Origin: Podarcis gaigeae
Taxonomy: Eukaryota
Assembly (NCBI GenBank): GCA_964106915.2
Contig: OZ066930.1
Length of the DNA stretch: 64,000 nt
Direction: 5' to 3' (one strand)
A program made the translations under genes and the position numbers. This document shows, in pieces, positions 43,101-46,100 of this stretch (within the stretch, counting starts at the first letter, position 1; the number at the start of each line of letters is the position of its first letter). Under the pieces are notes generated by a model, which was not told where the DNA came from, made no database searches, and saw only the letters and a program-made list of their open reading frames with translations.

Positions 43101-46100
43101 TCATGCCTGAATGTTCCCTCCCATATGCCCAGATGCTATTATGTCAGCTGCCTGAAACGCCTAAGAGGAGAAAATCAGAAACTTGCATGACCATCCCACG
43201 TTACATGTGGCACCCCCTTCTCTAGAAACAGAACTTGGCGAAGGGTTTGCAGAAAAGTAGCAGTGTGGTGGGGCCCATTGAGAAGAAGCAGCAGGTTGCA
43301 ACTTACGGAAACTTACTGTATTAAATACTAGCTTGAAAACAGTGCAACTGAAAGTCGCAACTTTAAACAAACACATCCTGACGAGGATGCACTTTTCACA
43401 GAAAAGTGTCCGTCTCAAAGAGCTGGTGCTGGCATGGTTGTTTTGGCCAGAGGTGTCTCTACTTATCCTCACATTTTGGGAGGGGGTACGCACCAGGGGA
43501 GGTGCAGTGGGCGGCATCTGGGGCAGGCTGGATGGAAAATGGCTGAATGTGTGCTGGTGGGTGTGTTGGTGCTGGTGGGTGTGTTGGTGCTGGTGGAACT
43601 CCGCCCTCAGCAGCGGCACCGGGCCAAGAGAGGCACCGGTCCTGTCCGAACTCTGAACCAAAAAACGATTATTCAGCTCTTGCCTGAGCAGCTCGTGATC
43701 TAGAAGAGGGAGAGAGAGAGAGGGAGAGGGGACGGGGAAAAGACACAAGGGCACAAGGGCCTGTGAGTTTCACAAAAGACGTAGAAGAAAAAGAGTCAAG
43801 ATATTCACCTGGCATTCCCTGTTTCTGCAGGTCATGCTGTGGTGGTTTTCTACGTGAGGACTCATTGGTGGAGGTAAGAGAGATGCCTGTGACAAAGTAC
43901 CAATCAGAATCCCCGAATGAGGCTGGCAATACATGATTGGTTGGTTGAATGATATCAACAGGCTGGTATCTAAAGACAAGAGAGAACACCATGAGTCATC
44001 ACAGCAGAAAAGATACTGGGGCGTTATCAACAAAGTGTCCCTTCCCCATCCCTCCTCCCAGCCCAAAAAACATTCATGATAGGATTTATTAGACCCTAAG
44101 CGAGGGGTGGAGGGTGTCATTAACTTTCCCCATCTTCCTTTCCACCCCACTAACATGTCTATCTCTACATTCAGAAGCATTTCACACTGACATTTTCCAT
44201 ACACATATATAATCTCCACGTAGCAAAACTCTCAAGCACACTGCCACTTATGAAGCAAAGGACCTGTAGTTTGTGTACTGTAGATTTAAGGGCTGGAGGA
44301 ACTGCTGAACGATAGTATTTTTTGTAAAAAAGAAAAGAAAAAGAAAATATGAATACAAAGGTAGACCTTCTTTAAAAAAACAAACAAACAAAAAAACCCC
44401 CAAAACACCCACAAACCTGCCCCCCACAATTGAACAGGTTCCCAGGGAAGCTTATAAAAAGTCAAAAATTATAATTAATATAATAAAACACATAGGGATC
44501 AGGATTCGAAATTAGCCAGGTGCATTATGTGCCTAAAGATACTCCATTTGCGAGCACCTCAAAAAGTCTGGGTGCCATTTTTTTTGCACCTGGCTGACAC
44601 TCAAGGATTACGGTACTTAAATGTGTGCGCTTTGAAGCCTCAAAGTACAGTGGTACTTTGGCTTACAAACAGTCCTTTTTACAAACTATTTGATTTACGA
44701 ACTCTGCAAAACCAGAAGTAGTGTTCTGGTTTGCGAATTTTACCTTGGTCTACAAATGGAAGCCGAATGGTGGAAGGGCACCAGTGGTGAGTAACCTCAT
44801 TAGGGAAAGCGCACCTCAGTTTAAGAACAGATTTGGTTTAAGAATGGACTTCAGAAACGGATTAGGTTCGTAAACCGAGGTACCACTGTATACATTAAGG
44901 ATAGACAATATGTTAAGGTGTTTAACAATAAAGAGTAGAGTGTTTTGAAAACTGAAGTATGGTGCCAATATTTTTATTGTAAACACCAAATTAAACATGT
45001 ATTAACAATTTATGCTAAAAATGTGATATTAACAATGTGTCTCTTATGTGAATTGCGTATTAGCTAATGCTTATCAAAATAATAAGCAGAAAATATTACC
45101 GACCCCCCCCCCCGAATGGTGAGTAGACATTCTGTTTTGGCGCCCACAACCCAGGTACCAGAATTGATTTGGCTCCCAGCTTTTCTATCCCAGTTTCTAA
45201 CATTGATAGGGATGTATCCAATGTTAGAACAGATCCACTGAAATTAATTGGCATGACTCAAATAGGTCCACTAATTTCAATGGGTCTACTCACGAGTATA
45301 ACTTAGTTGGATGCAGCCCTTAAAAATATTTAACCTGTCTTCCAGGTTAAATTTGTCAATATTATATCAAGTCTTTTGCTACCAAGCCATTCAATTAGTA
45401 AAGGAGACCAATTTACACCTATGATTTAAGCTTCCCTTGGGCTCCTTTGAGAGGAAGAGTGGGATATAAATATAATAAATAAATGAATGCCACCATTTAT
45501 TCCTTTAAAACAGGGCTGGTGAACCTGCGGCCCTCCAGATGTTGTTGCTGGACTACAACTTCCATTGTCCCTGATTTTTGGTCATGCTGACTGAGGCTGA
45601 TGGGAGTTGGGAGTCCAACAGTATCTGGAAGGCGTCATGATGCTTTAATGCTTGCAGTACTTAGTAGGTATCTGAGGTGTAAAATTCAAGAACAGGAGCC
45701 CCCCAAAGCAACTGGTGTTCCCCTAAAGGAAGTATTTAGCACTAATAATAAACAGTGATCACTGCAAATTATGATAGTGAGGGTAAAGACCATTCATTCT
45801 CAAGATCCAGGGTAAAACCCCCCATTATAAATAGATAAAACCTAGTTTACAAGGGAAAAGCAAGAGCCAAATGAAATGTCACAACAAAGAGACTGCTTAA
45901 CTTTAACCCAGGTCAACAGAAATCAGTATACAGCAGGGGCAAGTGGCTGAGGGCAAATGAACGCTCTCTACACTCTGGGAAGGTAAGTTATGGTTGGTGA
46001 GTGTGTTCAGTTCCCCCCATACTCTGCTTCTGCTCTGTTTACTTACAATATTATTTATAACCTAACATTTTATTTTTAAGGTCCTCTCCCCACCTGCTTT

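Follow-up and report, generated by a model that had tools for sequence, protein, structure and literature searches.

Exons 9a and 9b of FBRSL1 as a mutually exclusive pair: reading frame and a putative steric block from a predicted distant branch point

A 64-kb stretch of DNA of the lizard Podarcis gaigeae (contig OZ066930.1; the whole stretch of 64,000 nucleotides is called the window below) harbours exons 7-19 of FBRSL1 on its minus strand; in tblastn comparisons these match the FBRSL1 proteins of Podarcis and Zootoca at about 95% identity. Between exons 8 and 10 lie two alternative exons, 9a and 9b, and the HX repeat is present in translated exon 9b. We consider it probable that these two exons exclude each other through the reading frame together with a steric block, the latter imposed by a predicted distant branch point of exon 9b, and that the swap alters the protein. 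An original prediction, made from the letters of the window, had described a three-way splicing switch between a cassette exon and an HX exon. These are exons 9a and 9b of FBRSL1, respectively, and each of the sequence features that it listed is present at its position. All splice features were read on the minus strand of the window and are collected in Table 1.

The phase is 1 at the end of exon 8 and 0 at the start of exon 10, so that an mRNA can be productive only if a single phase 1-0 unit, either exon 9b or the long form of exon 9a, stands between them. These units are 206 and 161 nucleotides (nt) long, respectively, and each length leaves a remainder of 2 on division by 3. The short form of 9a, which ends at an internal donor, has phase 1-1 and can thus only precede 9b. 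By frame, the productive patterns are 8-9b-10, 8-9a-short-9b-10 and 8-9a-long-10, the first two of which each come in two versions because of a second 9b donor 21 nt downstream. The 8-10 and 8-9a-short-10 joins both read GTT CGA CAA GTA CGC TCC CAA ACT TGA, and the join of 9a-long to 9b reads ATC ACG AGC TGC TCA GGC AAG AGC TGA. Since the patterns 8-10, 8-9a-short-10 and 8-9a-long-9b-10 shift the frame into early stops, nonsense-mediated decay (NMD) is expected; by the rule that relates premature stops to exon junctions, all three should be subject to it. The frame barrier to combining 9a-long with the HX exon, a central element of the original prediction, can be read directly from the TGA within exon 9b.

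Annotation contains each of the three productive patterns, and for fish there is experimental documentation of the long-form swap. In zebrafish fbrsl1, exons 9a and 9b were cloned as mutually exclusive by Kondrychyn et al. 2017 in G3 (PMC5555464), and the complementary DNAs (cDNAs) fbrsl1-i1a and i1b reported there document the replacement of one exon by the other. The zebrafish gene shares with that of the lizard the order of the exons between 8 and 10, the in-frame junction of 9a with FDKY, and a 9b exon with the HX repeat and two donors 21 nt apart. The zebrafish paper differs from our analysis in that it presents the isoforms without an enforcing mechanism and without a short form of 9a. 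The lizard 9a peptide is identical to zebrafish 9a, read on into FDKY, at 46 of 53 residues (Fig. S7 of PMC5555464). The pair and its mutual exclusivity are therefore already known since 2017, and they are widely annotated.

Beyond zebrafish, 9a-long is joined directly to exon 10, with the HX exon left out, in 134 stored proteins from bichir, eel, coelacanth, frogs, a caecilian, turtles, crocodilians, birds, lizards, snakes, platypus, marsupials and placentals. Annotated 9a-long isoforms are found in the related lacertids Podarcis and Zootoca. The same junction is present in P0055, a 4,125-nt Logan contig that encodes 1,168 residues and, given this coding content, must be a spliced cDNA. Together, the zebrafish cDNAs and the 134 proteins show that 9a-long replaces the HX exon in frame, as had been proposed. 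As for the short form, it precedes 9b in 28 placental clusters, including those of cattle, sheep, buffalo, jaguar, seals, cetaceans and horses; the sequence runs from ...SGILI directly into D(H/R)ELLRQ and on through the HX repeat to FDKY. The predicted short-form junction is thus annotated exactly in these placentals. A three-way switch is not supported as a vertebrate-wide feature, as the GT of the short donor is absent from six ray-finned fish, and in sauropsids the use of this donor stays a prediction.

The frame decides which mRNAs are productive. A second barrier might operate at the level of the spliceosome, in the interval between the long donor of 9a and exon 9b. In the lizard this interval is 109 nt long and has ten adenosines in the intron body, every one of them within its first 47 nt. 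Two of these adenosines fit the yUnAy consensus, A43764 (CUCAC, intron nt 45) and A43796 (UUGAC, intron nt 13). The 60 nt that precede the acceptor region of 9b contain no adenosine on the transcript, in agreement with the original prediction; this is the sole A-free run of at least 60 nt on the transcript strand of the window, in which four runs reach at least 40 nt. SV40 small-t, alpha-tropomyosin and alpha-actinin gave rise to the proposal of a steric threshold of about 50 nt between the 5' splice site and the branch point, which has also been used for OGDH (PMC7969005). Because all adenosines of the intron lie no more than 47 nt from the long donor, any adenosine branch point would fall under that threshold. 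Distant branch points have a published signature, namely a good branch sequence on the 5' side of a long AG exclusion zone, and it is enriched among alternative exons (PMC1431707).

We propose that exon 9b uses a distant branch point in a CTSAC motif, at A43764, 5' of the 60-nt pyrimidine tract. At 45 nt from the long donor of 9a, this adenosine would lie below the limit of about 50 nt for U1 and U2 to be accommodated on one intron. Use of the long donor would then disable the 9b acceptor, and 9a-long would be forced onto exon 10. Conversely, with U2 committed first to the branch point of 9b, the sole options left would be the short donor, at a distance of 137 nt, and the skipping of 9a. In this steric model, no route but the short donor brings part of 9a into the same mRNA as 9b.

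The arrangement was compared among nine species, namely this lizard and eight Logan contigs with read-through open reading frames (ORFs), which represent a second lizard (L001), a species with a coelacanth-like peptide (L002) and six ray-finned fish (L003-L008). All nine have an exon 9a of 161 nt, a long donor that reads CAG/GTGA, and a motif ACTGAC or ACTCAC with GG..CC behind it. In eight of the nine species the adenosine of CTSAC (CTGAC or CTCAC) falls on intron nt 40-47; the exception is L002, with the adenosine at nt 19 of an intron of 57 nt in all. Among the eight species with 9b on the contig, five of them fish, intron length is between 57 and 244 nt (134-244 nt in these fish), and almost all of the variation is in the pyrimidine tract 3' of the motif. 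In none of these eight does an AG occur from the CTSAC motif to the 9b acceptor. Placental read-through ORFs have 24 codons between ...ECQ and DHELLRQ, which corresponds to an interval of 73 nt (70 nt in the Rhynchocyon model) and is thus also too short for a normal donor-to-branch distance. The spacing and the AG-free stretch thus lend comparative support to the branch-point barrier of the original prediction, and the branch point itself stays a candidate.

Indeed, several points weigh against a steric block of this kind. A gap of 40-47 nt falls only a little short of the threshold of about 50 nt, and the block could thus be leaky. Fish introns have more yUnAy adenosines nearer the acceptor, for example at intron nt 105, 124 and 198, and steric exclusion need not hold in these animals. 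Non-adenosine branch points also exist. The fixed spacing could alternatively reflect conservation of the first 60 nt or so of the intron as a block, for instance as a splicing enhancer. Finally, no sauropsid short form, the escape route in the proposed scheme, was present among the 120 best matches listed for a query made of exon 8 and the first 22 residues of 9a.

An alternative that we regard as rather unlikely is that the frame alone polices the choice. The frameshift and NMD would suffice to exclude 9a-long plus 9b, the 45-nt gap would still be spliced, and the CU-rich tract would be a PTB/hnRNP-type platform that tunes the inclusion of 9b. The TGA that follows the 9a-long-9b join fits this view, as do the four CUCUCU and two UCUU motifs of the tract and the fact that the distant-branch-point exons studied by experiment are all regulated by PTB (PMC1431707). 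The closeness of the gap, at 44-47 nt, to the threshold and the alternative fish adenosines nearer the acceptor can be read in the same sense. However, the intervals of 57 nt in L002 and about 73 nt in placentals are too small for a normal donor-to-branch distance, and eight of nine species keep 40-47 nt between donor and motif, whereas the length of the downstream tract varies about fourfold. We favour the combination of frame and steric block over the frame alone.

Whether the switch of this lizard has three positions or two depends on the short donor. It is quite conceivable, if slightly doubtful, that the lizard switch is a two-way one, that the GT at 43900 merely belongs to the Gly-Thr codons GGT ACT without being used as a donor in any sauropsid, and that the short form is mammalian. 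The short donor is weak, with a fit to the consensus at five of nine positions. At the same place, the six ray-finned fish have GGC ACA (G/gcacat) and no GT donor, and the short form is thus not ancestral; moreover, the sauropsid entries among the 120 listed matches are all of the long form. On the other hand, the GT is kept in both lizards, as well as in L002 despite a change of the codon pair to GGT GCT, by which Thr becomes Ala. Clustering at 90% identity may also hide short-form isoforms, and bovids, cats, seals, cetaceans and horses have the short form in their annotation.

Exon 9b has its own alternative end. For AUTS2 exon 9 as well as fbrsl1 exon 9b, an alternative 5' splice site conserved among jawed vertebrates has been reported (PMC5555464), to which the donor of the 21-nt extension at 43473 corresponds. 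One fish gene model, P0009, joins 9a to an internal CAG of 9b (CQ/ELNNRF) with the frame kept. We rejected it as a further pattern, as it looks like a gene-model artefact; the lizard has CAA where P0009 uses this CAG, and the route is closed there.

The distribution of exon 9a is narrow with respect to genes and wide with respect to species. A phmmer search with the 9a peptide against 1.84 billion representatives matched 25 proteins, with E-values of 1e-28 to 1e-17 for FBRSL1; all 25 are FBRSL1 or read-through ORFs of the locus, except for weak matches to the repetitive proteins P0021 and P0023. Taking these results together with word-index searches, which were seeded from a full-length FBRSL1 hit and retrieved the annotated isoforms, exon 9a was found in FBRSL1 orthologues only. 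No 9a-like exon was found in AUTS2; the hits that bear this name, from coelacanth, bichir and a bat, have flanks of the FBRSL1 type. A 54-residue 9a peptide is identical across 37 clusters from platypus, lizards, birds, crocodilians, turtles, frogs and a caecilian. Judging from these comparisons, the exon 9a/9b pair is conserved across bony vertebrates.

We considered and rejected two other views of exon 9a. The first is that 9a and 9b are homologous exons that arose by duplication; BLASTP of 9a against 9b gave an E-value of 1.2, with five identities in eight positions. The second is that CRNRECQ is a Cys/His metal-binding motif; both cysteines are replaced in zebrafish, by W and S. The label of a Cys/His-containing exon given in the original prediction is thus not supported, and a Pfam search with the 9a and 9b peptides yielded no meaningful family for either.

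At the nucleotide level, the first 69 nt of exon 9a are identical at 69 of 69 positions between the lizard and the six ray-finned fish contigs, synonymous sites included (three of the contigs were scored numerically, and all six were seen in the alignment). In the three scored contigs, 145-151 of the 161 nt of exon 9a are identical overall, with 83-89% identity in the part beyond the first 69 nt. As read from this alignment, the constraint on the first 69 nt exceeds what protein coding alone explains. The 45 nt or so that lie 5' of the 9a acceptor are also conserved in the compared contigs. RNAalifold pairs positions 44012-43993 of the intron upstream of 9a with positions 43863-43845 within 9a, in an interrupted helix of 18 base pairs. 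Its variable positions are limited to one pair, one bulged base and one A.C mismatch in L004; the variable pair is compensatory outside the lizards, with G-C in five fish, A-U in another and G-U in L002, against U.U in the lizards. The statistics of the helix are weak, with a duplex energy at p ~0.05 relative to dinucleotide shuffles and a z-score of -2.4 for the 340-nt fold. If it formed, the predicted helix would cover the likely branch-point region of 9a.

Distant branch points are known to enforce mutual exclusion in alpha-tropomyosin, alpha-actinin and OGDH (PMC7969005). The systems of alpha-tropomyosin and alpha-actinin resemble the FBRSL1 one in that the downstream exon has its branch point less than about 50 nt away from the upstream donor, with a long AG-free pyrimidine tract behind it, the branch point being a predicted one in FBRSL1. 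They differ from it in two respects: the two FBRSL1 exons lack homology to each other, and 9a has a further donor upstream that would offer an escape to partial co-inclusion. Distant-branch-point exclusion of alpha-tropomyosin exons 2 and 3 reportedly goes back to work of Smith and Nadal-Ginard in 1989. Distant branch points also serve the OGDH exons 4a and 4b; they lie 25-46 nt from the 5' splice site, and their conservation extends from fish to amniotes (Kralovicova et al. 2021, PMC7969005). Like FBRSL1, OGDH has a short intron whose AG exclusion zone tracks its length; the branch point is predicted for FBRSL1, whereas that of OGDH is experimental.

We also considered whether FBRSL1 had already been listed as a distant-branch-point gene, and rejected this view, as the gene is not mentioned in the text of PMC7969005 or in its accessible supplements. 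No description of a steric mechanism for FBRSL1 was found; among the literature matches listed for FBRSL1 and mutually exclusive exons, only the zebrafish paper treats this pair. Enforcement by a predicted and conserved distant branch point close to the 9a donor may thus be new for FBRSL1, although it belongs to a known class of mechanisms.

What the swap would mean for the protein is best approached from human FBRSL1 and its paralogue. FBRSL1 has been described as an adaptor that makes the non-canonical complex ncPRC1.3 repressive (2026 preprint, bioRxiv 10.64898/2026.10.20.760506). According to the same preprint, full-length human FBRSL1, with a near-perfect HX repeat in residues 407-532, recovers CoREST, LSD1, HDAC1/2 and CTBP1/2 and represses a tethered reporter, and residues 406-592, which contain this HX core, suffice for repression. 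Replacing 9b by 9a would remove 68 residues, including the HX repeat, and introduce an unrelated and extremely conserved peptide of 53 residues. The residues that would be lost correspond to part of the minimal corepressor and repression segment of the human protein. As the swap removes 68 residues inside the repression segment, a change in corepressor recruitment is better founded than one in co-activator recruitment, and we infer, by analogy with the human protein, that the swap may alter the recruitment of corepressors.

The original prediction had gone the other way, with an HX-plus form competent for co-activation. A toggle between p300-recruiting and non-recruiting forms of FBRSL1 would be in line with the requirement of the AUTS2 HX repeat for the interaction with p300 (10.1101/2021.03.30.437620; Liu et al. 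2021). AUTS2 exon 9 is indeed paralogous to 9b, and the HX repeats of the two proteins are almost identical. We nevertheless find such a toggle improbable. AUTS2 is the paralogue that recruits p300, whereas the corresponding region of FBRSL1 recruits corepressors: p300 was recovered with AUTS2 only, and both full-length FBRSL1 and its 406-592 fragment repress the reporter and bind CoREST, CTBP and LSD1 (10.64898/2026.10.20.760506). The notion of a co-activator-competent HX form is thus at odds with the behaviour of the human HX-containing protein, and a change in corepressor recruitment is our preferred reading of the swap.

FBRSL1 is a disease gene, and in the functional papers examined the isoforms named are I1, which contains the HX repeat, and short N-terminal ones only. 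An isoform that is deeply conserved and lacks the HX/Atrophin-1 core could differ in the corepressors that it recruits. A bolder proposal, which we offer as speculative, combines all these elements. FBRSL1 might harbour a hard-wired toggle that is older than the split between ray-finned fish and tetrapods, with a branch point of 9b that stays 40-47 nt off the 9a donor and makes the exons physically exclusive, and with the choice perhaps set by the invariant 69-nt core and the intron-exon helix. The Atrophin-1/HX corepressor core of an ncPRC1.3 adaptor would be swapped for an invariant 53-residue peptide, which might define a second class of FBRSL1-PRC1.3 complexes. If the steric model is true, FBRSL1 would represent a clean and anciently conserved case of steric exclusion, unusual for its non-homologous exons and for an internal donor that allows a partial escape.

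Table 1. Splice features of FBRSL1 between exons 8 and 10 in the window. In donors and acceptors, the slash marks the exon boundary.
Feature	Position	Strand	Remarks
Exon 8	50484..50737	-	phase-1 end ...SLVIPGHPA + G; donor CAG/guaggu at 50484/50483; start near 50737 approximate, by eye
Conserved intron element CTTTTCTGCTGTGATGACTC	43993..44012	-	23 nt 5' of the 9a acceptor; likely 9a branch-point region
Exon 9a, long form	43809..43969	-	161 nt, phase 1-0; acceptor tttag/AT; donor CAG/gugaau; 53-residue peptide after a split D codon
Exon 9a, short form	43901..43969	-	69 nt, phase 1-1; donor UUG/guacuu
Exon 9a nt 107-125, GAGTCCTCACGTAGAAAAC	43845..43863	-	predicted pairing partner of the upstream intron element
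Conserved motif AAACTCACA	43762..43770	-	candidate distant branch point A43764: 45th nt past the 9a long donor, 137th past the short donor
A-free, AG-free tract	43702..43761	-	60 nt, 88% pyrimidine, four CUCUCU and two UCUU; extended polypyrimidine tract of 9b
Exon 9b (HX exon)	43494..43699	-	206 nt, phase 1-0; proximal donor CUG/gugcgu
TGA after the 9a-long-9b join	43673..43675	-	9a-long, phase 0, into exon 9b
Optional extension of 9b	43473..43493	-	21 nt, adds VRTPSQN; distal donor AAU/gugagg, exon end 43473; phase 1-0 kept
Exon 10	40367..40417	-	phase 0-0; begins at 40417 (FDKY...)

The 9a-9b interval of placentals has a further property. In P0012, P0014, P0022 and P0024, which are read-through ORFs and one gene model, it is open and in frame, and its retention would give a protein with 9a, 24 residues and 9b; in the lizard, read-through from 9a into the interval meets a TGA after 12 codons. 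A regulated retained intron has been reported for Fbrsl1 in mouse islets, without the intron being named (PMC8395343), and the in-frame 73-nt placental interval is a candidate for it. Farther downstream, about 10-11 AAC repeats are found on the minus strand at 40230-40262, in the intron some 110 nt 3' of exon 10.

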